Positions 3,268 to 55,550 of a stretch of 64,000 nucleotides of DNA are shown here, in pieces; the stretch's first letter is position 1, and each line of letters opens with the position of its first letter. The notes under the pieces were generated by a model, which was not told the origin of the DNA, made no database searches, and worked only from the letters and a program-made list of their open reading frames with translations. Made by a program: the position numbers and the translations under genes. Source of the DNA: Paramoeba atlantica (lineage: Eukaryota; Protista; Discosea); NCBI GenBank assembly GCA_977017575.1, contig CDRNVI010000039.1:711930-775929 (forward strand), given 5' to 3'.

Positions 3268-3615
3268 TTAGCGGACACCCGCCTTCCTCCACTCTTTTAC
3301 CGCGGAGGATAGTATCGCGGGGTTGCCTTTTTGAACAGCCACATTAATGGCTTGTAGTGCATGACGCAGGAAACCTTTCCTGTCATACGTATACCTTGCG
3401 ATCTCCTTTAGGAGGAGTACGGTGCGCTTCCCTGCCACACCAAAAACGGTAAATGCAAGGGGGTAGAAATGCATACCCCTTTTCGTGGCCATGTCACTGT
3501 GCGCTTTTACTTTCAAGCTTTCCACCCTTTCTAGAGTGTTGCCAGGCGCTACCCATTCGGCCTTAACATAAGAAGGGGCGAGGGGGACATTCGGGATAAT
3601 CTTTGGAATGTGTTT
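3268..3615 (-). pseudogene. C-terminal RLE-region fragment of a non-LTR retrotransposon
   Basis: K..K.H...FYPLAFTVFGVAG...AINVAVQKGN resembles the end of CRE/R2-type ORFs. Confidence 0.6.
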
Positions 3616-4500
3616 GAATTGCGCTTCGAGGAACATATAAAACAGTAGAAAGAACAATAGAAAGCTTTATAAAATATCACAAATATACTTCCCTCATTTG
3701 CACACTACATTCCTCAGATTTTCTCTTGCCATAAATCCTTTCAGAAAATCTGCATACTTGCTGTAAAGTAGCTAATAAAAACAAGATCACCAATACAACA
3801 TATCAACCCTGAACTCCACCACCAAGAGATTTCTTGGTGGTTCAAAGGAAGTTTTCTTCCTTACGCGAACGGGTGTCCACGCGGGGAATGGTTATGGGGG
3901 TTGGTGGGTGGGGCAAAAAATTTTAAAACTGGAAATGAAAATGTTTTCTATAGATACACGTATACTCAATTCCAAACGCTTCAAATTCTTATGAAAGTCA
4001 TAATAAAGAAATATTATGTGCCCCGCAGGGCCAGTTATCACTCTTATAAACCTCTTGCACAATTCTTTCCGTAAACTTTTAGAATTGCGCTTCGAGGAAC
4101 ATATAAAACAGTAGAAAGAACAATAGAAAGCTTTATAAAATATCACAAATATACTTCCCTTATTCGCACACTACATTCCTCTGATTTTCTCTTGCCATAA
4201 ATCCTTTCAGAAAATCTGCATGCTTGCTGTAAAGTAACCAATAAAAACAAGATCACCAATAAAACATATCAACCCTGAACTCCACTACCAAGAGATTTCT
4301 CTCTTCCTTACGCGAACGTGTGTCCACGCGGGGACCGCAAAAAATTTTAAAACTGGAAATGAAAATGTTTCCTATAGATACACCTATACTCAATTCCAAA
4401 CGCTTCAAATTCTTATGAAAGTCATAATAAAGAAATATTATGTGCCCCGCAGGGCCAGTTATCACTCTTATAAACCTCTTGCACAATTCTTTCCGTAACC
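3616..4500 (-). mobile_element. orphan split-direct-repeat termini (B-j-A-B-A) of a YR retroelement, ~466-bp period
   Basis: GAATTGCGCTTCGAGG at 3616 and 4082; G-rich linker at 3889-3914 like those at 22974 and 46375; junction 4060-4087 resembles the other YR families. An inverted B fragment lies at ~1811-1893. Confidence 0.65.
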
Positions 4501-4509
4501 TTTTTTTTT

Positions 4510-4775
4510 TGGTGTTTTTTTATCCACCCTCAAAAGATAGGGTGGTTTTTTTTTGTCAAGGGGCACCTTATTTGCATTACCTAAGGTGCAGGGGTATAGC
4601 GCACCCCACCTCCCTAGCTGTAACCTAACTCCTCTCCAAGCGGAGGTCAGCCGTAGCTTGTTATGGCTGGCTCTCCGGATACGTCGAAAGACGTATTCGG
4701 ACTGCCCGTTTGGGGAGTTGAGGGGCCATAACGTTTCGGAGTCAAAAGGCCCAATACATCATCATCATCATCATG
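4510..4775 (+). mobile_element. 3' half of SINE-like element with (CAT)n tail
   Basis: Near-identical to the reverse complement of 50943-51200. Confidence 0.8.
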
Positions 4776-4974
4776 AATCCTTTCCAGAAAACAAGAGGGG
4801 GGCGCAGAAAGTGGTTTTGGTCCAGCAGGGTTAAAGGAGGCCACAGACGTGAGCGGGAAGTATGGCGTCACGCACGTGACGCTCACTTCTTGTCTCTCCA
4901 CCGGAGCTCGATCCTTCGCCTTGACGTGGCGCTCCGGCTTACCACCCTTTTGGGTGAACCAAGAAGGGATCAGT

Positions 4975-5440
4975 CACGTAAATTGTACCAGACGCGGTAC
5001 AGAGGGAGAGGGCGACACCCCTGACGGTTTCATAAATAGTACCAGACGCGGTACAGAAGAGTAGGGCGACACCCCTAACGGGTCGCATAAATAGTACCAG
5101 ACGCGGTACAGAAGAATAGGGCGACACCCCTAACGGGTCGCATAAATAGTACCAGACGCGGTACAGAAGAGTCAGGTGACACTCCTGACCGGTCGCATAA
5201 ATAGTACCAGACGCGATACAGAAGAGCAGGACGACACCCGTGACGGGTCGCATGAATAGTACCAGATGCGGTACAGAAGAGTAGGGCTACACCCGTGACG
5301 GGTCGCACAAATAGTACCAGACGCGGTACAGAAGAATAGGGCGACACCCCTGACGGGTCGCATAAACAGCACCAGACGCGGTGCAGAAGGTGAGAACGAC
5401 ACCCCTGTTGGTTACAATAACCGTACCAGACGCGGTAGTA
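4975..5440. repeat. 55-bp tandem repeat, about 8 copies
   Basis: GTACCAGACGCGGTAC recurs at 4985, 5039, 5094, 5149, 5204 and onward. Confidence 0.9.
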
Positions 5441-5893
5441 GGTGGTTCAAAACACGAATTCCATCACAAATGGTACCGTTGACGAAGATTGTTGTTGAAT
5501 GTTGTTAGGCTTTCTATCCCATTCGGGATGTTGCCTCCCCGGAGTAAGCCGAGGTAGCTTTGGGGGAGGCTATTACTCAAAGGTGGATTTTCATCCACCT
5601 TGTCCGCTGAAACTATCTTAACCCTTTCAGGTTGAGACATTCAAATCCAAGGACAGCATGCAAAATCCAAGGACTACATAAGTGTGTTCCGCAGGACCGA
5701 GAGTGGCCTCCCCCGGAGTAGCCGCCCATTACTGCTTGCTGGCATAGTTCGGGAGCGTTGAGTCTCAGCTTCAACAGTTTAGACTCCTCAGCTTCAATGG
5801 ACCAAGTCTTCTAGGGTGTTATACAACAACAACAACAAATACACTGAGTCCTTTTTAGTGGACCAGTTAGGGGCTCTCGAGTAGGTTTTTTTA

Positions 5894-6012
5894 AGAGTAC
5901 AACACTCAGGGTTCCCGAGCGATCGCTCACCTCAGTACTAACTGAGCCTGACGGTGCTTAACTTCACAAAGCGAACGGGATGTGGTGTTTTCACCGTAGT
6001 ATGGTCGTACCC
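5894..6012 (-). rRNA. 5S: 5S rRNA copy 1 (probably retroposed)
   Basis: GGGTACGACCATACT...GTGAAGTTAAGC...GTTAGTAC...GTGTTGTACTCT, 119 nt, matching the recalled trypanosomatid 5S layout. Confidence 0.92.
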
Positions 6013-6024
6013 TTTTTTTTAAAA

Positions 6025-6143
6025 AGAGTACAACACTCAGGGTTCCCGAGCGATCGCTCACCTCGGTACTAACTGAGCCTGACGGTGCTTAACTTCACAA
6101 AGCGAACGGGATGTGGTGTTTTCACCGTAGTATGGTCGTACCC
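6025..6143 (-). rRNA. 5S: 5S rRNA copy 2 (probably retroposed)
   Basis: One substitution versus copy 1; joined to it by only TTTT-AAAAAAAA. Confidence 0.92.
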
Positions 6144-7588
6144 CCGTGCTATACCCCCGAGTGGCCTTGGCTTCTCAGCTTCAAAGGGCTAAACCTCGGC
6201 TTCAAAGGGCTCCTATCTCTCCGAATTCTGACCCTAACCCCGTTTTAATGGGTTATTTGCAAGCCGCAGATGAGCGGTACCCAACCCGAAAAGCGGTATG
6301 AAGTTCCCCTTAGGGGCTCATCTTCAGGTGCATTTCAGGCCTATCCATTACAGGGTCTAGCGTTCACACAGTTTTAGTTCCTTGGGAATGATTTTTTAGT
6401 ACCTCTGTTTAACGTTTGGGTTTTCGTGCTCTTTCTATATTCATCTATTGTCTTTATCCAACTTTTTTTATTCTGGGCTTTCAGTTTCGATGAGCAATCT
6501 GTTGTTATCCCAACTCTTTCCAGTGCAGCTACAAGGCTTCTACTATAGCATGGCAGGCTTCGTTTATATGTATTTCCTCTATTTTGAGTTGATCGATATT
6601 TGCCGAATAGCACTCTGTTCGGGAATCTATCTGGACCCATTCTTGCGACGTGTCCAGCAAACAGTAAACTTCGGGCATCTATTTGTGGCTGGAGTGGGTC
6701 CATTCCTGCGATCGATAGGCATTCCTTCTGGGAGGTATATCTTATTGCATCCTTCGCAGATTCTTGGTGTTGTTTATCATTGGAGTCGCTATTGTCGTTC
6801 TTGACCCATGGTATGCCGAAAGATGTTTTGATGTATCTTATATAGGCGCGGTTGAGTTTCAGATGCTGGGTTTGTGTAAGCGCCCACGTTGAGCTCGCAT
6901 ATAGTAGAATTGGTACTATACAGACTTCTAGGATGTCTTTTCGTTTTCCTTGTGATAGCCTTATCTTTCCACAAGTCTCTAAATTTTCTCATACCTGCGC
7001 AAGCTCTTCCTATTCTGTTTTCTATTTCTTCTTCCAATGAAGCATCTTCACTGATGACTGTTCCAAGGTATGAGAAGTTCCGTACTTGTTCAATAGTTTC
7101 TTCTTGTGCTTTTATCTCGGATGTGTAATACTTTTCAGCTTTGCAAGGTTGAATTACCTGTGTTTTAGTTTTCCTTGTGTTTATCCTTACTCCCCATCGG
7201 TTCATAACCCCTACTACTGACGAAGACTGTACCGTTATCATTCCACCCATGCGACTGCATAAGATGGGATTCCGACAACATTGTATAGATGCTGAAATGA
7301 ATTTTGATAGACCAGACAGAAGCATTTCTTGTTTTTCGAAGTGATTACCGAAACATGAGAAATCCTTTAGATGGTAATTGCGGCACTTTGATCTCGCCCC
7401 GGTGGAGAGACAAGAAATGCTTCTAGGCTCAGCTCTGAAGACTAGAAGCTAACTTCTTGGCTTGACATTGAGGGAGAGTCCTTCATCATCTACTAATGCA
7501 ATGTAGAAATACGAGTGTGATGAAATGTGCCAATATGAATATGATCCACCGCAATATGAGAAAACGTGTAGCCTACATAATTTTATAG

Positions 7589-20225: not shown

Positions 20226-21240
20226 GGAAAGCTACGGGAAACGTGCCATGAGGACTTGTCTGCGCGAAGCGTGTCGTTGTCTTATCCGCAGGTTGTGATT
20301 TCTGGCCTCGAGCGCCCAAACCTCCTTTCAGCTCGGCTGGGTTTCGTCAACTTCCGGATGAGCAATCTTCGCGCTCACGGAAAGCTACGGGAAACGTGCC
20401 ATGAGGACTTGTCTGCGCGAAGCGTGTTGGTGTCTTATCCGCAGGTTGTGATTTCTGGCCTCGAGCGCCCAAACCTCCTTTCAGCTCGGCTGGGTTTCGT
20501 CAACTTCCGGATGAGCAATCTTCGCGCTCACGGAAAGCCACGGGAAACGTGCCATGAGGACTTGTCTGCGCGAAGCGTGTTGGTTTCTTATCCGCAGGTT
20601 GTGATTTCTGGCCTCGAGCGCCCAAACCTCCTTTCAGCTCGGCTGGGTTTCGTCAACTTCCGGATGAGTAATCTTCGCGCTCACGGAAATCTACGGGAAA
20701 CGTGCCATGAGGACTTGTCTGCGCGAAGCGTGTTGGTGTCTTATCCGCAGGTTGTGATTTCTGGCCTCGAGCGCCCAAACCTCCTTTCAGCTCGGTTGGG
20801 TTTCGGCAACTTCCGGATCAGTAATCTTCGCGCTCACGGAAAGCTACGGGAAACGTGCCATGAGGACTTGTCTGCGCGAAGCGTGTTGGTGTCTTATCCG
20901 CAGGTTGTGATTTCTGGCCTCGAGCGCCCAAACCTCCTTTCAGCTCGGCTGGGTTTCGTCAACTTCCGGATGAGCAATCTTCGCGCTCACGGAAAGCTAC
21001 GGGAAACGTGCCATGAGGATTTGTCTGCGCGAAGCGTGTTGGTTTCTTATCCGCAGGTTGTGATTTCTGGCCTCGAGCGCCCAAACCTCCTTTCAGCTCG
21101 GCTTGGTTTCGTCAACTTCCGGATGAGTAATCTTCGCGCTCACGGAAAGCTACGGGAAACGTGCCATGAGGACTTGTCTGCGCGAAGCGTGTTGGTGTCT
21201 TATCCGCAGGTTGTGATTTCTTGCCTCGAGCGCCCAAACC
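20226..21240. repeat. 153-bp tandem repeat, about 6.6 copies
   Basis: GGAAAGCTACGG at 20226 and 20379; 51-codon unit. Confidence 0.92.
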
Positions 21241-22726
21241 TTTCCTTATTGTAAGACCTTTCCTTATTGTAAGACCTTTCCTTATTGTAAGACCTTTCCT
21301 TATTGTAAGACCTTTCCTTATTGTAAGACCTTTCCTTATTGTAAGACCTTTCCTTATTGTAAGACCTTTCCTTATTGTAAGACCTTTCCTTATTGTAAGA
21401 CCTTTCCTTATTGTAAGACCTTTCCTTATTGTAAGACCTTTCCTTATTGTAAGACCTTTCCTTATTGTAAGACCTTTCTTTATTGTAAGACCTTTCCTTA
21501 TTGTAAGACCTTTCCTTATTGTAAGACCTTTCCTTATTGTAAGACCTTTCTTTATTGTAAGACCTTTCCTTATTGTAAGACCTTTCCTTATTGTAAGACC
21601 TTTCCTTATTGTAAGACCTTTCCTTATTGTAAGACCTTTCCTTATTGTAAGACCTTTCCTTATTGTAAGACCTTTCCTTATTGTAAGACCTTTCCTTATT
21701 GTAAGACCTTTCCTTATTGTAAGACCTTTCCTTATTGTAAGACCTTTCCTTATTGTAAGACCTTTCCTTATTGTAAGACCTTTCCTTATTGTAAGACCTT
21801 TCCTTATTGTAAGACCTTTCCTTATTGTAAGACCTTTCCTTATTGTAAGACCTTTCCTTATTGTAAGACCTTTCCTTATTGTAAGACCTTTCCTTATTGT
21901 AAGACCTTTCCTTATTGTAAGACCTTTCCTTATTGTAAGACCTTTCCTTATTGTAAGACCTTTCCTTATTGTAAGACCTTTCCTTATTGTAAGACCTTTC
22001 CTTATTGTCAGACCTTTCCTTATTGTAAGACCTTTCCTTATTGTAAGACCTTTCCTTATTGTAAGACCTTTCCTTATTGTAAGACCTTTCCTTATTGTAA
22101 GACCTTTCCTTATTGTAAGACCTTTCCTTATTGTAAGACCTTTCCTTATTGTAAGACCTTTCCTTATTGTAAGACCTTTCCTTATTGTAAGACCTTTCCT
22201 TATTGTAAGACCTTTCCTTATTGTAAGACCTTTCCTTATTGTAAGACCTTTCCTTAGTGTAAGACCTTTCCTTAGTGTAAGACCTTTCCTTATTGTAAGA
22301 CCTTTCCTTAGTGTAAGACCTTTCCTTATTGTAAGACCTTTCCTTATTGTAAGACCTTTCCTTATTGTAAGACCTTTCCTTATTGTAAGACCTTTCCTTA
22401 TTGTAAGACCCTTCCTTATTGTAAGACCTTTCCTTATTGTAAGACCTTTCCTTATTGTAAGACCTTTCCTTATTGTAAGACCTTTCCTTATTGTAAGACC
22501 TTTCCTTATTGTAAGACCTTTCCTTATTGTAAGACCTTTCCTTATTGTAAGACCTTTCCTTATTGTAAGACCTTTCCTTATTGTAAGACCTTTCCTTATT
22601 GTAAGACCTTTCCTTATTGTTAGACGTTTCCTTATTGTAAGGCCTTTCCTTATTGTAAGACCTTTCCTTATTGTAAGACCTTTCCTTATTGTAAGACCTT
22701 TCCTTATTGTAAGACCTTTCCTTATT
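21237..22726. repeat. 18-bp satellite A (GACCTTTCCTTATTGTAA), about 83 copies
   Basis: Direct reading. Confidence 0.97.
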
Positions 22727-24177
22727 GAAATCAACGTCTTCTCTCCCCTGCATCATAATGAAAGTAAACCATGTTAAAACCAATTTTCCTAGTAATATAT
22801 CGCTTCAATGAAAGTTTCAGTCCAATCATCCCGACTATTTTTAGTTTCCAATAAACTATATCTATCTGACGAATTATCAAGGTACCTGGCCAATATAATA
22901 AAAACAATCACAGAAACCCAGTCAACAACTCCTGAAACTTACGAACGGGCATCCCGTCCACCAACTCCGCGAAATGGTTGGGGGTTGGTGGGTGGGCGCA
23001 ATTTGAAAAGGGTAAAAGAAGGAGTGTCGCTATACACAAAAACAATATATATGACTTCATCCCGAGTACTACTAAATAATAAATCTCATTACATCTAACA
23101 ACGGGTGCCCCTTTCGGGGCCACAATCTGTAAAAACAAATCATAATATAAATATTATGTGCCCCGAAGGGCCATTATGTCAATCATCCTAAATTTCTAAA
23201 CGTATACTTCTAGAAATCAACGTCTTCTCTCCCCTGCATCATAATGAAAGTAAACCATGTTAAAACCAATTTTCCTAGTAATATATCGCTTCAATGAAAG
23301 TTTCAGTCCAATCATCCCGACTATTTTTAGTTTCCAATAAACTATATCTATCTGACGAATTATCAAGGTACCTGGCCAATATAATAAAAACAATCACAGA
23401 AACCCAGTCAACAACTCCTGAAACTTACGAACGGGCATCCCGTCCACCAACTCCGCGAAATGGTTGGGGGTTGGTGGGTGGGCGCAATTTGAAAAGGGTA
23501 AAAGAAGGAGTGTCGCTATACACAAAAACAATATATATGACTTCATCCCGAGTACTACTAAATAATAAATCTCATTACATCTAACAACGGGTGCCCCTTT
23601 CGGGGCCACAATCTGTAAAAACAAATCATAATATAAATATTATGTGCCCCGAAGGGCCATTATGTCAATCATCCTAAATTTCTAAACGTATACTTCTAGA
23701 AATCAACGTCTTCTCTCCCCTGCATCATAATGAAAGTAAACCATGTTAAAACCAATTTTCCTAGTAATATATCGCTTCAATGAAAGTTTCAGTCCAATCA
23801 TCCCGACTATTTTTAGTTTCCAATAAACTATATCTATCTGACGAATTATCAAGGTACCTGGCCAATATAATAAAAACAATCACAGAAACCCAGTCAACAA
23901 CTCCTCAAACTTACGAACGGGCATCCCGTCCACCAACTCCGCGAACCAACCCGTTCGCCCGTAATCCAAACTCCCGCGCGCACGTGTTTGTAGCAAATGG
24001 TGGCGGCCAATTACTAAAAACTCGTAACGTTTTTCAAGAATTCCTACCGCGTAATAAAATTGAATAGTATATATTTTCTATATAGCTAATTTTTTTTTTT
24101 GATTCTATATAATGAGTTTTACTAATTAATGGTACATTCATACCTATGCGAGTTTCCATACATGTATGTATACATGC

Positions 24178-27084
24178 TTATCCGGTGCGGCTGATAGGGT
24201 CCGCTGGGTTTTCGGCAGATCTCACGTAACGTGCCATGATACATACGCCAAGGTTCTGATTTGTCTTCAACACACGCTTGAGCTCTCCGGCAATACTGTC
24301 GGATTTCGCGATCTTGCGTTTGAATGCTGCTTGACAAGAGGTGTTGTCAATAAACAAATCAACACAGGTTCCTTTTTGAAAGTGGTGTGTCAGTTTTTCA
24401 AACGCAAGTCGAACGGCCATCGCCTCAGCGTGATTCACTTCGTATTTGAACTCAGGTTGCCATTTATCGCCAACAATAATCACTTGTCCGTCGTCCCGGT
24501 AAAGAACCGCGCCCCATCCTTTAGCCGACGCATCCGTGTACAGTCGGTGTTTATGCGGGACAACGTCAGGATGCGGAGGTGGTGATATAGGCTCATTTAC
24601 CAAAATGATATCACGCCAATTCGCGAGAATCGATCGGGTGGCTGTCGGAAGAGGAACCGGTTGATGTGCGAGTTCGGGGCATCGGTTTAACTCATTGATA
24701 CGTCGTCTAACAATCTTTAAGGGGAAATGATAGTCTGGTATAATATGACCCAAGACCGCTGCTGCATAGAGGAGGCGCCCCACCGCCGTCTCCAATTGAG
24801 AGTACGTAATATTACGAAACCGATCTCGTGACATTTTCCGTATAACCCTAGGCCCCAGGTTGACCTTATGGGTTACGTGATTGTAGAAGACGCCGTTAAA
24901 AACATATTCAGTGGAGGGGTCAAAACCAGCCTCCTTGAACAAACCTCCCACTTCCTTACACCGTGAATCCACGAATTTCACAAATTTATCAGCTTGTTCT
25001 TGAGATCCTGCGAAACGAATCCCGTCTATATAGACGTCCACAGATCCAATGCATGAAACTAGTTCGGGTTTGCATACCGCCAGATCGCCTGCTAGTGTAG
25101 CTGTAATCTTGTGCATAATTTCAGGGGCGCATCGGTGCCCCATTGGCATAACCTTCATCTGGTGTAAGACGCCATTTAGATCTCGAAAGCGAAATTTGGC
25201 ACGAGCCTGGCGCGGAATTGGAACTTGATAAAATCCACATCGGAGATCGCGCTTCACCCCCACTTCTTCGGCAGCCTTATGGAGATAACGAGAAGGATGC
25301 AACAAAGGCACGTCTGGCTTGTAGTCTTTTAATCGCAAGTTATCATCCTTGGTCCATGATATGAAACGGCGCCTATCGTTGCCTTCCTCGTCGGATTCGA
25401 CTACCGTGAATGGAATTACGTATTACAGCGTTGGGTACCGGCGTATGTCGTCCTCCTCCACTCTTTCTATCACTCCGGCTTCAAGTAAACCCGTGATGTC
25501 GGCATTTACAAGATTACCTTTTGTTGAAGGCTCTGGTTGGGCTCCTAGTCGTGTATTAAATAATTCACCTATTACCGTTTCAAGCCGGCGGCGCGCTTCA
25601 GGGGTCATCCAATTCTTTACTTTTTGTACATCCATAACGGGTATTCCAACTTTAACGTGTAGGGGAAGGTCCATATCTTCGGTACGTGCAAGACGGGATG
25701 TACGGCGCGCGCAAATAATGCTGTATCGTCGAACGTGCGGTATTTGATCAAAACAAAGATTTACATCCTCTTGAGTCATTGTATTGGGAGGAGAACCGAG
25801 GCTCGCTGAGTACCGAGGGCTTTCGCCGTCGTAATAAGGTTGCCGTTGTATCGCAAGAGGGAGTTTATGCATTGATGCTTTGCTATGTTTTGAACGTCGG
25901 AGAGAGCGACGTGTCCGAGCGCCACCTCGCTGAAAAGGTGAGTTATCGCGCCGCGCTTCAGGGAATGTGTTCCAAATCCCGGACCTAGAATCCTCTGCAT
26001 CTTTCGGTCCATCTCCCGAACCGTTGTACTCGCTATGTGTTGGCCTTCCCTCATGAATTGGACGTAATTTGCAATCTCCTGAGTTCCTTCCCCTTGGATC
26101 GCTGTGCACATCGATAGCCGGTACGGGTTGAGACGCGTCGATTTTGTATTCCTCCCCCAATAAATTATTACTTCGTTTGGTTGATGTCGCACAAATCGTT
26201 CCAGAGTCAGTTCGGCCACCTCTGTCCATCTGGCCGCAGCCTTCCAACAAATCAAGGCGGCTATCCCTTCTCTTAACGACAATTTTTCCCTGAGCCGGCG
26301 CAGCTGCCATGGAGTAATCGGTTCCATCTGACGAGTAGGCTCGAGAGCCCCCCTTGCTTGTAGGGCTTTCGCGAACATTTTGAGTGAAATTGGATCCTTT
26401 TGGCTTAGTTGAAACACCGTCTGGAGATTTCGGGTGTAGCTTAACAGTGTTGCTGGTGCGAGATCGAGTTGATTTAAGAAAAGGACGGCGTGTACTGGAT
26501 CTCGCGGAAAACCGCTTTGTAGACAAAACTTTTCCAGTCTTTCCCAAAGTCGCGCCCTCGTTAGCCATGTAGCATTTGTCCACATTGGATTGATTGCGCT
26601 TTGAATCTGACGTGCGATAGGACTCAGAGGCGGTAGATTTAGAATTGTATATGTTAGTTTTTGCTGGACTGAGCGCAATTTTGTTTCCCTGGTGTTGTCT
26701 CCCGCGGGACGCATTTCTTGAGGTTTTTTGGCTTGCGGTTGCAGGCGTTGGCGTTTGGCTTGAGGGATATTTGACTTTGTCTTTAATTCCGCCACCGGAT
26801 TCCGTGGCGAATGCAGTACCGTTCCGTGACATGCCGTGAAGGCACGCACCTTCCCTGCAGAGTGCAGTGATGAATTGCAGAATATACCTGGATAAATCAC
26901 CCGCCGCTTCTTCAGCGGACAGACACGAGCGATATAAGGGGTGGGGAACCTGGCCTATTGGCTCCTCTTTGCACCTGTTGTGCCGCTCGTCACCCCGCCC
27001 CGAAAACCCGGGGTCGAACGAGTAGAAGATTGATTTAATGGGCAGTTGGCGCGAAAGTGACCTGGCTTGTGGCATCGATAGCAA
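24178..27084 (-). pseudogene. RT/RNase H with nonsense change (CAA to TAA at ~25423)
   Basis: Comparison with the intact copy at 12815-15721. Confidence 0.85.
25776..26900 (-). CDS. tyrosine recombinase (intact)
   Basis: Near-identical to 14413-15537. Confidence 0.9.
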   Translation of the reverse strand: MIYPGIFCNSSLHSAGKVRAFTACHGTVLHSPRNPVAELKTKSNIPQAKRQRLQPQAKKPQEMRPAGDNTRETKLRSVQQKLTYTILNLPPLSPIARQIQSAINPMWTNATWLTRARLWERLEKFCLQSGFPRDPVHAVLFLNQLDLAPATLLSYTRNLQTVFQLSQKDPISLKMFAKALQARGALEPTRQMEPITPWQLRRLREKLSLREGIAALICWKAAARWTEVAELTLERFVRHQPNEVIIYWGRNTKSTRLNPYRLSMCTAIQGEGTQEIANYVQFMREGQHIASTTVREMDRKMQRILGPGFGTHSLKRGAITHLFSEVALGHVALSDVQNIAKHQCINSLLRYNGNLITTAKALGTQRASVLLPIQ

Positions 27085-41599: not shown

Positions 41600-44500
41600 A
41601 TGTGTGATACTAGGAATAGGGCGAAGGCTTCCGGTCCTTTTCGAGCTTTGCATGAGGTGAAAGCTAAGCTTCGAAAGGCCAAGTGTTCTCGGGGAAACCT
41701 CTTTCTGCCCCCCCAGCGGAGGGAGGGAGTAGCGAAACTTCGGCCGCGCGCGCTTCATCGTATGGCTTGTTTGATGAAAGTTGGGGTTAGGGTCACGATC
41801 GTGTGGCATAAATCATACTGCCTAAAGCTACGCTTGTGGGAAGGAACTATTGTGCGGAACGGGTCAGGGTGTTGCGAGATTAAGTACGACGCAGTACCTT
41901 GCATGGCTTTTTGTTTTCCACCGCAAGATGATCGGATTATTATTTCAGGGGGGTTTGTTGCCTCGGCCAAGAAACAAACGAAGCGAAACGATAGATGCAA
42001 ACGCAAAGCCCGTCCTCCGAGTGGCGCCGGAGGGCGGAGGAGTAACGTGGAAAGTTGCGCTAAGAGAGGGGGCTTTCGAGTAGGTACTTTGAATGTTGAT
42101 ACATTGAAGCTTCGGCATGCGACACATTGGGCTTTACGTAAATCGTTTCGTATATCGCAAATTGTACGTATGATGAACTACTATAATATTTCCGTTGTTG
42201 CATTGCAGGAGACGCGATTGACTTTTAATGGTGGGCAAGATATTTTACGACACTGTGTGCACATTGCGGGGGAAAACATTCACATTTATTTGATGAGCGC
42301 TTCCAAAGGATACAATGGTATGGCGTTCCTGAGCAAAATGCCGCTTACAGTCGAAAAAGTTAGTGACAGAATTATATCTGGTAGTTTGAAAATTGGTAAA
42401 TTGCAAACGTGTATTTTTAATATATATTCCCCAACTGCAGCATCGGATAAAGACAAGCAGGATGAATTTAACGCCAATTTATTTGACGCGTGGCAAAAAA
42501 GTAACCATGGCCTTAAAATCATTTGTGGAGACTTTAATTCCCCGCTGCAGAAGCCTTTTCGCGGAACCGAGCACACTGATCGAACGAAATCTTTTAAACT
42601 CTTTCTTAGCACACTCGAAGCACGTTCAGCACACATGTGCTGTTGGCCTAAACGGCAGTGGACGTATACATTTCCAAATGGAGCAAAAAAGCAATTGGAC
42701 CACATCGTTGTCAACACGCGATTTGCTTCTTCCATGGGTGAAAATAGAGTACTGTTGCCACCCATTCCAACTCCACACTGCTTTAACTGGGTTGGTTTTC
42801 GAATAAAATGGAAGCGTGCATCACTTCCGACCCCACCGAGACCGTATTGGGGTTCACTGAGGGATGAAAAGACTCAAGATGTTTTCATCAAAAGCATAAA
42901 AGAAGTGCTCCATGCTCCACAGAAGCGACAACGAGACGGCAACATGACTGTCTCAATATGGAAACGAATGGAGTCAGCAATCAAGACATCATCCAAAAGT
43001 TTACCAAAGATGTGTAAAAACCTGACGTTAAACGAAGAACAGAAGCGTGATATTTCTAAAGTAAGACCGGAGGAATACAGTGATAACGAAAATGATCTTG
43101 AAAAAGTTGTCAAACTCTCGAGAAATCGGAATTTATTTGAAAAAGCCTCCATTGAGCATACGGCGCAAATTGAAGAAGTTATTGAAACAGAGTGTGCCAA
43201 TCTTGCTGATGACCTGCGCAAGAGATCTGGAGCAGCATTTCGAAAAATTCGGAAAATAATCGGAGACAATAGAGCTAAGATAGGATTCTTCGGAAATAAT
43301 GAGCGACAATGTCTCGAAAAAATTTATGACCATTTCAGTAAAATTGGGCATTCTTCCACCGAGGAGGATGAAGTAGTGAAGTTTATCGATGCATTGAAAC
43401 CCACTGTTCCTATAAACGATGATCCCTTCACCATTGAAGAATTGTATGGAGCTTTGTCAAACATGCATAATGGAAAAGCAGCAGGAAGTGACGACATACC
43501 AGTTGAAGCCTACAAGGCCCTATCGAAAGATGCAGAACTGTCCACTACACTTCTAAACATTATCAATGAGATCCAGGAAACGGGAATTACAGATGATACG
43601 TGGAGGACTGTTCTGCAAGTGCCAGTGCCTAAAAAGGGAAACACCAACGATTTGTTACAGTGGAGACCTATTTGCTTAGTCAATCATATTGTAAAGGTTA
43701 TGAATCGCATGGCCTTGGAAAGAATTCAACCTGCATTAGAAGAAATGCTACGACCCAACCAGTTTGGCTTTCGGCCGAATCACTCAACCTCAGGTGCCCA
43801 AGCAATTTTTTAAGAGATAACTCAAAAGGCATCTCGAGGATCCGGAGGTGTGGCCGTTGGTTTCGTAGATTTCAAACAAGCTTTTCCTTCCGTATCACAC
43901 AGCGCTATTCGAGCAGCCTTATCAGCATTTCACATACCTGAGAACCTCAAAAAGCTAATTTTGGCATTATATTGTGACTTAAAATCTTTTGTGCGCACCC
44001 CATACGGGGATACAGAAAGCTTTCGAGTTCGAAATGGTACACTTCAAGGCGACGTACTTGCCCCCACGATTTTTGTCATGGTGCTGGATCGTATTTTGTG
44101 TGCAGCAATAGATAACAAACAATTTGGATTGATTACACAAAGCCGGGGAACCAGAAGTCGAGGCAAAGAACGCATTCGTGTATCGGATACCAATTATGCC
44201 GACGACATTGCCCTTTTTGCAGAGTCAAAACAAGAACTCTCGAAAATGATTGAAAGCTTGGTTTCTTGTGCCGGGAAATCTAACCTTAGAGTTTCTGTGG
44301 GACCATCAAAAACAGCATGGATGACATTTGGGCGAGTTCCTGATTCGAATGGCCCTTTAATCGTAACAAGCATTGGCGAAATTCCACGAGTAAAACAGTA
44401 CCGGTATCTAGGAAATGTTTACGAAGAGGGCAAAAGATGTAAACCTGCTCTAGAACGTGTAAGGGCAGCATGGTATGCAATGAATAAGCTGCAAGGAATC

Positions 44501-45862
44501 TGGAACTCCCCACTGCCCATAAGTTCAAAGCTAATAGTTTTCAAAACATTGGTAATGCCTGTGTTGGTCTATAGTGCTGGAACTTGGACACTCACGGATA
44601 AAGAAACCAAGCATTTAGATACACAGGTTCATCGAATGAGAAGATGGGTTTGTGGGGTAAGTTCATGGGATGGCAAGAAGGGCACACGTTTGGACTCTCT
44701 ATACCAAGGTGACGACAGAGTCAGCACGACATCGAGAATTAAGAGAGCACAATTGGTTGGTCATCTGGTTCGTCATTCATGTCTCTATACACATGCTTCT
44801 ATGTGGAGACATAATGAGGAAAGCAAATTCCCCACTACTATTGAACAATGCGCAAGGGACTTGAATCTTCTCGTAAGCGAGGTATTCGTACAAGCCCAAG
44901 ATAGAAGTCATTGGTCGTCACTTATCGGGCAACTTCGTAAACGTCTTGAACCCAATCACGGTGTAACAACATTCGGATCAACGAAATGGATGAATGAGTA
45001 TAAGAGAACCTCTAAGGATACAACATACGAGAACCTTCAATTTCTTGAGGAAGGACCCAATGTTTTCCCATTGAATCGCAACGAAGTTCACCTGTATACT
45101 GACGGTTGTCTCATAAGAAAACAAGGGAAAATGCAATGCGGGTGCGACATATTAGCACTGGGGCATCAGCTTCCAACTATAAATTTGGGTTTAAGGCTTC
45201 CGGAGGAAATAGAACGAACCTCTTCCAACTCAGAGATGTATGCCCTTTGTGAAGGACTTGATCAGGCATCTGGCTTAACGCGCACTGTTGTTATTCATAC
45301 TGATTCTACTTATGTCTGGGATTTTGTTCATAAGTTAAGACACCAGTTTAGATTAACGGGATACCAAAAAGCTGAAAACCCTTCCCTCCTTCGTGTTATC
45401 GATGCAAAGCTCCGTAAGATTGAAGAAACGAATTCTATATACGTTGTTAAAGTTAAAGCTCATTGCGGCAACCAGTACAACGAAATGGCTGATTGGCTTG
45501 CAAAGCAAGCAGCTGAAAGACAAGACGTTTCATTATCATCCTTCTGTTTCAGACAAAACATACCGAAATCTAAGAACAATAAAATTGCTAGGAAAAGAAA
45601 TCCAACTCAAGAAGTAAGTAATATGAGTAAATCCAAGGTAGGAAGAGCAAACAGTCAAAGAGGTACATTAGTGCTCCTAAAGGAACCTAAGAAAGCTGAT
45701 AAAGTGAAACATCCATGTAGCACAATAGGAAAACGTGCAAATCGAGATGACGTGCTTTCACAACGAGCTAACAAACGTGGCATCGGGCAAGATTTCAATG
45801 AAAAATCTCATTTTACACCCAAATTTGGTCGAAACCCGCAAATAAAAAGGAATCTACAGTGA
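41600..45862 (+). pseudogene. LINE family 2 ORF: N-terminal domain, APE, RT, RNase H; one in-frame TAA at 43811-43813
   Basis: GTLNV, LQET, GDFNS, LDHIV; RPICL, DFKQAF, GTLQG, YADD; YTDG, TDS, HCG...NEMAD. Confidence 0.88.
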
Positions 45863-47006
45863 GAGAATTGAATGTCTTCTTGATTTTCAGACCATACTGA
45901 AGCTGTCTTCCGACAATATACTATTTATGAGAACGTCTTATCCGACTGCGATCCCTCCCCCCAATTCAAAATAAAATCAATTAACAATATTTGTTAGTGA
46001 CATTAAATCGGTAGCAGTCAGATTGCGGCAAAAAAAAAAAAAAACCTGCATGTGTACATTTCTGTTGTTCCGGAATCTTAATTATTACTCGTTGAGCATT
46101 GTTCCTGGTCGAGGTTTTCATCCTGGCTTGAAATCCGCAGCGAGGCGTCCGAACATTCAAAAAAGCAGAAACAATATAAAGTATCTAATTCCAGAAATAC
46201 ACACTTCTGTCTCTTTTCACTGAACATACAATATTTTTATAGAACAGGAATACATGTATACTACGATCTATAATGCGCACGCTAATAAGATAATAACTTG
46301 GTACCGAATCTAAAATCAATAATAAAACAAGTAAATACTATGTGAAGGGGCTAAGCCCCCCAACACTCGCAGCCGTGGCTGGGGGTTGGGTGGGTGGGCT
46401 TCGAAAACGTGTAGATTTTGTATTTGAATAGTCCCTAAGCACATACACATCCGTTAATAACTTTTCTAATGAATTTACGAAATCAATCAATCAACAGTCA
46501 CATTTTCAATGATAAGTAAAACTATACGTAATAAGCTCTCGCCTGAATTTCTTACCGTAAACTATTAGAAATCCGCAGCGAGGCGTCCGAACATTCAATA
46601 AAGCAGAAACAATATAAAGTATCTAATTCCAGAAATACACACTTCTGTCTCTTTTCACTGAACATACAATATTTTTATAGAACAGGAATACATGTATACT
46701 ACGATCTATAATGCGCACGCTAATAAGATAATAACTTGGTACCGAATCTAAAATCAATAATAAAACAAGTAAATACTATGTGAAGGGGCTAAGCCCCCCA
46801 ACACTCGCAGCCTCCAACCCGCTCACGCGTAGCTATTGAGCTCCTTTCTCGCGTTTATCCAATGTTGCTTGTCATGATAGAATGCCAAAAAGGGTGACCA
46901 AACCTTCGTGACACGCTTTTCCGAGGAACTAGCCCTGCCTAGATTCTGAACTAAAGAAAACAATTTTTTTTTTTTTTTTTTTTTGAAAACTACATGTATA
47001 TGAACG

Positions 47007-51990: not shown

Positions 51991-54420
51991 GTTGAATGTT
52001 GTTGTTAGGCTTTCTATCCCATTGGGGATGTTGCCTCCCCGGAGTAAGCCGAGGTAGCTTTGGGGGAGGCTATCACTCAAAGGTGGATTTTCATCCACCT
52101 TGTCCGCTGAACTATCTTAACCCTTTCAGGTTGAGACATTCAAATCCAAGGACAGCATGCAAATCCAAGGACTACATAAGTATGTTCCGCAGGACCGAGA
52201 GTGGCCTCCCCCGGAGTAGCCGCCCACTACTGCTTGCTGGCATAGTTCGGGAGCGTTGAGTCTCAGCTTCAACAGTTTAGACTCCTCAGCTTCAATGGAC
52301 CAAGTCTTCTAGGGTGTTATACCCCCGAGTGGCCTTGGCTCCTCAGCTTCAACGGGCTAAACTTCGGCTTCAAAGAGCTCCTATCTCTCCGAATTCTGAC
52401 CCTAACCCCGTTTTAATGGGTCAGTTGCAAGCCGCAGATGAGCGGTACCCAACCCGAAAAGCGGTATGAAGTTCCCCTTAGGGGCTCATCTTCAGGGTGC
52501 ATTTCAGGCCTATCCATTACAGGGTCTAGCGTTCACACAGTTTTAGTTCCTTGAGAATGATTTTTTATTACCTTTGTTTAACGTTTGGGTTTTCGTGCTC
52601 TTTCTATATTCATCTATTATCTTTATCCAACTTTTTTTATTCTGGGCTTTCAGTTTCCATGAGCAATCTGTTGTTATCCCAACTCTTTCCAGTGCAGCTA
52701 CAAGGCTTCTACTATAGCATGGCAGGCTTCGTTTATATGTATTTCCTCTATTTTGAGTTGATCGATATTTGCCGAATAACACTCTGTTCGGGAATCTATC
52801 TGGACCCATTCTTGCGACGTGTCCAGCAAACAGTAAACTTCGGGCATCTATTTGTGGCTGGAGTGGGTCCATTCCTGCGATCGATAGGCATTCCTTCTGG
52901 GAGGTATATCTTATTGCATCCTTCGCAGATTCTTGGTGCTGTTTATCATTGTAGGCGCTATTGTCGTTCTTGACCCATGGTATGCCGAAAGATGTTTTGA
53001 TGTATCTTATATAGGCGCGGTTGAGTTTCAGATGCTGGGTTGGTGTAAGCGCCCACGTTGAGCTCGCATATAGTAGAATTGGTACTATACAGACTTCCAG
53101 GATGAGTCTTTTCGTTTTCCTTGTGATAGCCTTGTCTTTCCACAAGTCTCTAAATTTTCTCATACCTGCGCAAGCTCTTCTTATTCTGTTTTCTATTTCT
53201 TCTTCCAATGAAGCATCTTCACTGATGACTGTTCCAAGGTATGAGAAGTTCCGTACTTGTTCAATAGTTTCTTCTTGTGCTTTTATCTCGGATGTGTAAT
53301 ACTTTTCTGCTTTGCAAGGTTGAATTACCTGTGTTTTAGTTTTCCTTGTGTTTATCCTTACTCCCCATCGGTTCATAACCCCTACTACTGCGTTTAAGGT
53401 ATTTTGCAGTTCCGTTTGTTCGTCCGACCAAAGAACAAGGTCATCCGCATACGCTATGAGTCCGAAAACATCTGTACCGGTTACTTTATCGCCTCGTTGA
53501 GCTCTTCCTTTTGGGATCCTCCATTCGACACGGATGCCTGCAGTTTTAATCTGTAGTGCTTTCCGGAGTACAGCATCAAATGTTGCATTGAATAGCAGGC
53601 AGCTCATTGGACAGCCTTGTTTTAAGCCGCCAGGTATTTCGAAGCTTTCACTCTTCGTGCCGTCGTTTAACATGACGCTTGCAGTTGTTGTGTTATATAG
53701 TGCGCGAATTAGTTCCAATAATGGTCCTTCAATTTTCAAACTCTGAAGGGTGGCCCAGACTGCCTCTCGTGGTAAGGTATCATAAGCCTTCTCGAGATCC
53801 AGGTAGGCAAGATATAACGGTGATTTGTGTCTCCTGACTTCCTCCGTGATTCTTCTGAGTATGAAGATCGCATCGTCTATACCTCTATTATGTCGGAAGC
53901 CATTTTGGGCTTCTAGAAGTCTAGCATCGACGCGCGCTGCAATACGATGTGTGAGTATGCCAGATAGGACTTTCGCTGCAGGGCTCATTATTGAAATTGG
54001 GCGGTAGGATCCGGGATCGCAGGCTTTGCCTTTTGCTGCGCCTTTGTAGATTGGTATGATGTGGGAGTGCGTCCACTCTTTGGGAACCTTGGAGTTTTGC
54101 CAGCAAAGTTTCAATATCCATGTCATCCAAATAATTGCGGCTTTTCCTGCAAATTTGAGATGTTCGGGGAAAATTCCGTCTGGGCCTTGTGCTTTCCTAT
54201 TTTTTAGTGTAGACAGTGCGCGTTCTACTTCCAGTTCGTTTGGAGGATAACTATTTTCTTCTTTTTCCATGCGAAGGACATCGTCCTCTATGGCAGGGTA
54301 CTTTAGTTCTTCTAGGTCTTGTTGTACTCTGGATAAATTAAATAGGGGGTTTGGTGTGTTAAATATCCTAGAAAAGGAAGTGGCCAGTGCTTGCGCTTTG
54401 GCCTCTGGGTCAGAGACCAT
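51991..54420 (-). mobile_element. 5'-truncated LINE family 3 with RT ORF 52543-~54420
   Basis: RPISI, DLEKAYD, GLKQG, YADD; (AAC)-like tail. Confidence 0.88.
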
Positions 54421-54468
54421 TTCATTCGGCATTACGTTTAGATAACTAATTATATAGTAGTAGTATAG

Positions 54469-55550
54469 TATAAATTTAGGTTTAAGGCTTCCGGAGGAAA
54501 TAGAACGAACCTCTTCCAACTCAGAGATGTATGCCCTTTGTGAAGGACTTGATCAGGCATCTGGCTTAACGCGCACTGTTGTTATTCATACTGATTCTAC
54601 TTATGTCTGGGATTTTGTTCATAAGTTAAGACACCAGTTTAGATTAACGGGATACCAAAAAGCTGAAAACCCTTCCCTCCTTCGTGTTATCGATGCAAAG
54701 CTCCGTAAGATTGAAGAAACGAATTCTATATACGTTGTTAAAGTTAAAGCTCATTGCGGCAACCAGTACAACGAAATGGCTGATTGGCTTGCAAAGCAAG
54801 CAGCTGAAAGACAAGACGTTTCATTATCATCCTTCTGTTTCAGACAAAACATACCGAAATCTAAGAACAATAAAATTGCTAGGAAAAGAAATCCAACTCA
54901 AGAAGTAAGTAATATGAGTAAATCCAAGGTAGGAAGAGCAAACAGTCAAAGAGGTACATTAGTGCTCCTAAAGGAACCTAAGAAAGCTGATAAAGTGAAA
55001 CATCCATGTAGCACAATAGGAAAACGTGCAAATCGAGATGACGTGCTTTCACAACGAGCTAACAAACGTGGCATCGGGCAAGATTTCAATGAAAAATCTC
55101 ATTTTACACCCAAATTTGGTCGAAAGGAATCTACAGTGAGAGAATTGAATGTCTTCTTGATTTTCAGACCATACTGAAGCTGTCTTCCGACAATATACTA
55201 TTTATGAGAACGTCTTATCCGACTGCGATCCCTCCCCCCAATTCAAAATAAAATCAATTAACAATATTTGTTAGTGACATTAAATCGGTAGCAGTCAGAT
55301 TGCGGCAAAAAAAAAAAAAACCTGCATGTGTACATTTCTGTTGTTCCGGAATCTTAATTATTACTCGTTGAGCATTGTTCCTGGTCGAGGTTTTCATCCT
55401 GGCTTGAAATCCGCAGCGAGGCGTCCGAACATTCAAAAAAGAAGAAACAATATAAAGTATCTAATTCCAGAAATACACACTTCTGTCTCTTTTCACTGAA
55501 CATACAATATTTTTATAGAACAGGAATACATGTATACTACGATCTATAAT
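54469..55550 (+). repeat. segmental duplicate of ~45178-46274
   Basis: Near-identical, with one ~14-bp indel; spans the LINE 3' end, a poly(A) run and part of YR B. Confidence 0.9.

Follow-up and report, generated by a model that had tools for sequence, protein, structure and literature searches.

Two complete 5S rRNA copies joined to a LINE 3' end within one target-site duplication: anatomy and probable origin of a chimeric insertion

A stretch of 339 bases on the minus strand of the window, which is the whole analysed DNA of 64,000 nucleotides, raises an unusual question: how did two complete 5S rRNA sequences come to lie head-to-tail, each followed by a run of A residues and together followed by a short tail, within the 3' UTR of an unrelated LINE? 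An earlier note on this DNA offered two answers. In the first, a reverse transcriptase (RT) primed on the 3' end of a retroposon and jumped twice onto oligoadenylated 5S RNA; in the second, the structure is a nascent SINE derived from 5S rRNA. The sequence itself, the native 5S genes, the LINE that supplied the tail, the target site and the other 5S fusions in the 45.7-Mb assembly all bear on this question, and they are taken up here in turn.

Anatomy of the insertion and its target site

The insertion spans positions 5816-6154 of the window including both copies of its target-site duplication (TSD). The DNA itself shows its parts and the source of each, as well as the empty site and the duplication. 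Read on the minus strand, the order is TSD, GG, first 5S copy, U4, A8, second 5S copy, U1, A7, the final 61 nt of a LINE, and TSD. The 5' TSD copy, GTATAGCAC (6146-6154), differs from the empty site by one transition. It is followed by two extra G residues at the 5' junction (6144-6145), which are not templated by the upstream flank of the native 5S gene (...acgcc directly before GGG). The first 5S copy (6143-6025) is a complete 5S rRNA by both the Rfam match (RF00001, 98.7 bits, model positions 1-120) and comparison with the native gene, from which it differs by one T-to-C transition. Four residues of the Pol III terminator (U4, 6021-6024) are retained on it, at the same place as the TTTT of the native gene. 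The A8 linker (6013-6020) is missing from the native locus, where the sequence runs on as AAATGCAAG. The second 5S copy (6012-5894) is likewise complete (RF00001, 99.2 bits, model positions 1-120), and it is identical to the native gene. The description in the earlier note of two full copies joined head-to-tail by TTTT-A8 thus agrees with both the Rfam matches and the direct reading.

Downstream of the second copy lie a single U (5893) and an A7 linker (5892-5886), the last A of which may equally be derived from the LINE, so that this junction occupies 5886-5893. The unique 3'-terminal segment of the donor LINE, CCTACTCGAGAGCCCCTAACTGGTCCACTAAAAAGGACTCAGTGTA (5840-5885), is 100% identical to 11 other genomic copies and is followed by the (TTG)n microsatellite tail of that LINE, TTTGTTGTTGTTGTT (5825-5839), as read from the sequence. 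The 3' TSD copy, GTATAACAC (5816-5824), closes the insertion, and its opening GT keeps the TTG register going. The TA7, the tail segment, the (TTG)n tail and the flanking repeats had all been described earlier, and each proved correct to the base. A hairpin, CUGGUCC/GGACUCAG, is predicted inside the segment 5840-5885. The predicted fold of the 62-nt tail has an energy of -14.2 kcal/mol with z = -1.57, and z is +0.62 for 171 nt; the terminal stem-loop is therefore a modest one in prediction, and the 12 genomic copies of the tail hold no variation from which covariation could be read.

Taken as a whole, the insertion amounts to 330 bp with a 9-bp duplication, the two copies of which match at 8 of 9 positions. 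A single TSD pair encloses everything, and duplications inside the insertion are absent. Both 5S units share one orientation with the LINE tail. Each begins at +1 and closes with residues of the terminator, U4 on the first and U1 on the second, after which the A run follows.

The host of the insertion is a minus-strand non-LTR element present in two copies in the window, about 46.5 kb apart. Host copy 1 (5491-7219) is truncated on its 5' side, which ends at 7219, carries a (CAA)n-like tail, and is bounded by GACGAAGA on both sides. Host copy 2 (51993-54519) has an ORF with an RVT_1 domain (52543-54519, E = 2.8e-32); its 3' UTR measures about 550 nt and is closed by a (CAA)n-like tail near 51993. 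The two copies align on either side of the insertion, with 98.2% identity over 325 nt between window positions 5500-5824 and 52000-52322, and 97.8% identity over 1077 nt between 6146-7219 and 52314-53390. These alignments meet at 52314-52322 (minus strand), where the 9-mer GTATAACAC is present once with nothing in between; the empty site proposed at this position is therefore real. Measured in copy 2, it lies about 220 nt downstream of the stop of the RVT_1 ORF, which bears out the placement of the insertion inside a LINE 3' UTR. At least 40 further uninterrupted copies of the site exist elsewhere in the genome, ten of them identical to copy 2.

Native 5S genes and the donor of the LINE tail

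A tandem array of native 5S genes is the simplest conceivable source of two 5S copies in a row, and a native array with the same 12-bp spacer and the same downstream tail had been named beforehand as the finding that would overturn a retrotransposition origin. Tandem arrays of native 5S genes of the same type, repeating about every 2.55 kb, are found on contigs C107, C97, C74, C11 and C3. Every native gene is preceded by ...caagttacgcc and followed by TTTTAAATGCAAGAGG, the downstream flank also being given as TTTTAAATGCAAG. Neither the 12-bp spacer nor the LINE tail is present in the native 5S arrays, whose spacer and downstream sequence differ from those of the insertion. Because both flank and period differ, neither the two A runs (A8 and A7) nor the 12-bp spacing is of genomic origin, and a native tandem array is ruled out as the source of the insertion.

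The donor of the tail, for which a search had been proposed, was found: it is a LINE with an ORF of 1226 aa, whose 3' end matches the tail exactly. The final 61 nt of the insertion occur at 12 places in the assembly, with a 27-nt core identical in 12 of 12, and a search for diverged relatives of this core with up to three mismatches allowed returned the same 12 identical copies only. On contigs C78 and C21 the tail continues upstream without interruption into the UTR and the ORF; on C80 these blocks also lie downstream of the ORF, split by three nested insertions. The intact ORF (L073, positions 3491-7171) carries Exo_endo_phos, RVT_1 and RNase_H domains, and its closest solved structures are LINE-1 ORF2p and R2. 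Its endonuclease is of the apurinic type, giving an APE-RT-RNH ORF. The 3' UTR of about 900 nt contains an internal A run (15-20), a block of 18-nt repeats with the unit ATCCTGGTTGAGCATTTR, the terminal segment and (TTG)5-8. The family is young, with tail-bearing copies of identical core. A stretch of about 560 nt comprising A20, the 18-nt repeats and the tail was first read as a non-autonomous element or as further poly(A) chimeras; comparison of loci L073, L005 and L008 with the copy in the window identified it as plain LINE 3' UTR.

The window itself holds a copy of this family at 42064-46131 (plus strand), whose ORF is 99.25% identical to that of the intact copy. This ORF is split into two frames at about 43813-43850, the internal A run has 15 residues, compared with 19-20 elsewhere, and the 3' UTR breaks off at 46131, before the tail. 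A second piece of the same LINE lies at 54469-55407 (plus strand).

Among the 12 tail copies, five are truncated at their 5' side within a 10-nt zone located 52-61 nt from the end (loci L009-L012 and window position 5885), and the point at which the chimera passes from LINE to 5S sequence falls in this same zone. The zone lies just 5' of the predicted terminal hairpin, and from the clustering of truncations it looks like a hot spot at which the RT may stop or switch. The TSDs that are visible around tail copies of the donor LINE are 9-13 bp long, start with G/T-T and overlap the TTG register, and the insertion studied here carries the same signature. At the other 5' junctions of this LINE, 0-2 extra nucleotides are found and never an A run.

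Origin of the insertion

Based on these observations, the insertion very probably arose by a single event of target-primed reverse transcription in which the RT changed template twice, each time to an oligoadenylated 5S RNA. The endonuclease of the young LINE would have nicked the 3' UTR of a copy of the older, unrelated host LINE at GTATAACAC. The RT would then have primed on the (UUG)n end of its own LINE RNA, copied 61 nt and left this RNA in the zone where stops are frequent. Synthesis would have been taken up again at the 3' end of a 5S rRNA with a terminal U1 and about A7, which was presumably copied to its 5' end, and a second hop would have led to another 5S RNA carrying U4 and A8, again copied to the 5' end. 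Addition of two extra nucleotides and joining of the cDNA to the target would finally have produced the 9-bp duplication. Since the RT would have made its first switch from within the LINE RNA and not from its 5' end, either a broken LINE RNA or pausing of the RT must be assumed. The order of these steps, the template switching and the reading of the A runs as short oligo(A) tails of the surveillance type on 5S transcripts are all reconstructed from the anatomy. The exact LINE 3' end, the 5S termini, the non-genomic A runs, the one TSD and the empty sites support the first answer of the earlier note, with its two jumps. Template switching by LINE RTs, once or twice in succession, has been documented (PMC2104539; bioRxiv 10.1101/2025.02.02.635956) for mammalian L1 and for Magnaporthe MGL, where one tripartite chimera is flanked by a TSD (PMC2104539).

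Two sources can be considered for the A runs. They were probably carried as tails on the 5S RNAs that served as acceptors, a reading favoured because the other 5' junctions of the donor LINE never show an A run. Their addition by the RT itself is possible although less likely. Capture does not depend on oligoadenylation, since the other 5S chimeras of the genome have no oligo(A) linker. In yeast, the surveillance system of TRAMP and the exosome acts on Pol III transcripts that have kept their terminal oligo(U) and gained a short non-encoded oligo(A), and oligoadenylated 5S occurs at and beyond the mature 3' end (PMC3102002). In trypanosomes, an MTR4 homologue is linked to polyadenylated intermediates of rRNA (PMC2175323). 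The U4-A8 and U1-A7 ends found here match the form of such oligoadenylated Pol III transcripts, although the yeast tails have a median of 3-5 nt and the tails here are deduced from DNA (PMC3102002). The chimera can thus be regarded as indirect DNA evidence for oligoadenylated 5S transcripts in this organism.

A broader proposal can be built on this likeness, namely that oligo(A) tags added by surveillance make 5S transcripts preferred landing sites for a jumping LINE RT and that the products seed SINEs headed by 5S. We consider it unlikely. If true, RNA-surveillance tagging would feed the formation of retrocopies, and a 5S-SINE fusion on contig C3 (described below) could be a source gene.

Of the remaining explanations, that of a nascent or active 5S-derived SINE is the one raised by the earlier note, and it can be given only a very low probability. 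It would have Pol III read through from the terminator-less second 5S copy into the LINE tail, the product then being retroposed by the LINE machinery. A 5S head with a LINE 3' tail is indeed the architecture of 5S-derived SINEs; the second 5S copy is identical to the native gene and followed by a single T, and 5S is joined to a high-copy SINE at several other loci. Both a 5S-type head with an internal promoter and a LINE-related tail are therefore present. The search for other copies of 5S plus tail, however, recovered exactly 12 tail copies in the assembly, with 5S on this one only, so the structure is single-copy and not a multi-copy family. Moreover, the first 5S copy still has its T4 terminator, and no T4 stands directly after the tail: the next one on the minus strand comes about 230 nt past the second 5S copy and about 170 nt past the tail. 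Because of this distance, any Pol III read-through RNA would extend past the LINE tail, and as judged from the sequence a Pol III end at or just after the tail is missing. The second answer of the earlier note accordingly finds no support in copy number or terminators, and the chimera is a dead-end fossil and not a propagating element.

A similarly small chance is left to an origin in which the chimeric RNA was made first. Ligation or aberrant processing would here have yielded a 5S-A8-5S-A7-LINE tail molecule that was reverse transcribed in one pass, with no switching; the resulting DNA would look the same, and for U6/L1 chimeras an origin by RNA ligation has been put forward (reviewed in bioRxiv 10.1101/2025.02.02.635956). 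Two ligations would be needed, however, each joining an oligo(A) 3'-OH to the 5'-triphosphate end of a 5S RNA or to an internal position of the LINE RNA, and the recurrent truncation of the LINE at 52-61 nt in copies without any chimera points to an RT that leaves its template there.

Less probable still is the stacking of three independent insertions, in which a truncated LINE tail was followed by an A-tailed 5S retropseudogene and then by another 5S. Only one TSD pair exists and internal duplications are absent; with A7 and A8 lying 3' of each 5S, the later insertions would also have had to hit the 5' edge of the previous one exactly.

The least credible explanation is an assembly artefact produced by a chimeric or mis-joined read. 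No public contig bridges the junctions of the chimera, but a 9-bp duplication, exact 5S termini, U and A runs, a precise LINE end and one common orientation would all be unexpected in an artefact, and the TSD together with the exact RNA-type termini makes it very unlikely. The public data consist of Logan short-read contigs from four runs (X1-X4) labelled as the same organism, with 29-39% of sampled words. Over window positions 5500-6500 these contigs show the empty-site joint (5819 to 6150), from other copies of the host LINE, 5S genes in their native flanks, and LINE tails that run on into LINE sequence. In these four runs, as collapsed contigs, neither a chimera junction nor any of the private variants of this host copy was found. 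Since the variants of the host copy itself are missing as well, the Logan contigs are uninformative on the locus.

Other 5S fusions, related systems and sequence context

The genome contains 41 matches to this 5S type, and at least six or seven loci besides the present one are fused to retroelements. A bona fide second chimera lies at C51:48615 (L066): after a complete 5S and UUUU come 22 duplicated nucleotides and then a high-copy SINE that lacks its 5' part, and the whole is enclosed by a TSD of its own, TGCCAGTCACG. At C48:255204 (L067), C86:63536 (L074) and two loci on C8 (L075 and L076), 5S is joined to a full SINE, the two C8 loci being near-identical with an upstream flank in common. 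In the 5S-SINE fusions the complete 5S passes directly into the 5' end of the SINE (CUCU-U(1-2)), and the junction sequences vary between loci. In the fusion on C3 (C3:779823, L077), 5S is still preceded by 90 nt or more of its native upstream flank and is followed by the SINE and then by non-native sequence. This arrangement suggests that a 5S cDNA was resolved against a chromosomal 5S gene, or that recombination occurred later, so that the locus is a candidate for either a source gene or a product of recombination. At C21:753520 (L070), two 19-nt stubs of the 5S 5' end precede a full 5S with UUU, an array of 18-nt repeats (AAGACCATCGTTTTTTGT) and ATG-containing sequence; this downstream part resembles the 5' portion of a different element. 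A search for oligo(A) linkers at these other 5S fusion loci found none. The capture of 5S is recurrent in this genome, with various partners.

One or two 5S 5' stubs of 18-19 nt (GGGTACGACCATACTACGA or ...ACTAAT) stand directly upstream of the full 5S in both L070 and L067. They look like the outcome of repeated short jumps or of stuttering at the 5S 5' end. The outermost stub of L067 overlaps a possible TSD (AAGGCGACC) by microhomology.

The partner SINE is about 380 nt long, with at least 500 candidate copies and 97-99% identity among 40 scored copies, and it is young. Its head, GGAGGTGGCGGAGTGGCAAG...GAGTTCAAACCCGCTC, is tRNA-like, and its tail is T-rich with GATTTGG repeats; ARAGORN returned no tRNA call on the tRNA-like head.

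The present insertion shows the features by which template-switch chimeras are recognised, namely a LINE 3' end, RNA copies in the same orientation with RNA-type termini, and one TSD with an empty site. It belongs to this known kind, the LINE template-switch chimeras, and calls for no new mechanism. As in the mammalian U6/L1 and 5S/L1 chimeras of the type described by Buzdin, a small Pol III RNA lies 5' of a LINE 3' end within one TSD-flanked insertion, and as in the U6/L1 chimeras the small RNA is 5'-complete and in sense orientation. The mammalian chimeras have a poly(A)-tailed LINE partner, in contrast to the (TTG)n tail, the U(n)A(n) linkers and the protist host of this one. The 5S/L1 class makes up about a tenth of a recent catalogue of human chimeras and is mostly truncated and antisense, whereas both 5S copies here are full-length and sense (bioRxiv 10.1101/2025.02.02.635956). 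The WEIRD-MgSINE-MGL chimera of Magnaporthe grisea likewise joins three retrotranscripts through two jumps within one TSD, and switching took place there, as here, at preferred sites of the first template; it differs in that the present insertion used the 5S acceptor twice and has A runs at both acceptor ends (PMC2104539).

With regard to SINEs, the comparison is of another kind. SINEs derived from 5S rRNA, such as SINE3 of zebrafish and the 5S SINEs of fruit bats and other mammals, are multi-copy and transcribed from the 5S promoter. A 5S head with a LINE-derived 3' tail is common to both, but the structure studied here is single-copy and double-headed, and no terminator follows its tail.

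What the locus adds is of modest extra value: junctions of oligo(U) with oligo(A), the twofold use of 5S, and a protist setting with a microsatellite-tailed LINE. It offers a legible record of double template switching, with exact junctions and with both the donor LINE and the empty site in hand. It also extends the 5S/LINE chimeras, known from mammals and fungi, to what we take to be a kinetoplastid-type protist. Considered together with the other fusions, it marks 5S RNA as a frequent bystander template, the step before the birth of 5S-derived SINEs.

Two motifs bear on the identity of the organism. The 5' end of this 5S type is GGGTACGACCATAC, and in L077 (C3, about 780.1-780.9 kb) an SL-like motif, ...CAGTTTCTGTACCTTGTTG followed by GTATGAG (in longer form ...GATACAGTTTCTGTACCTTGTTG followed by GTATGAG), adjoins a 5S gene. 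Both resemble kinetoplastid sequences, and the organism is presumably a kinetoplastid-type protist. Linked SL/5S repeats occur in bodonid-type kinetoplastids, and an SL-like motif near 5S fits with this.

A second, very different 5S type (GTCTTCGGTCATACCC...) occurs on contigs C137-C182 (loci L013-L042) as dispersed single genes. It is flanked by purine-rich and AT-rich low-complexity sequence. The arrays of the kinetoplastid-type 5S are carried by different contigs, and two organisms are probably represented in the assembly.

Elsewhere in the window, an 18-bp unit, GACCTTTCCTTATTGTAA, is repeated over a long array at about 21075-27000, detected as 325 overlapping 300-nt register matches with 18-bp spacing. 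The 18-nt units of the donor-LINE 3' UTR and of C21:753520 differ from the unit of this array.
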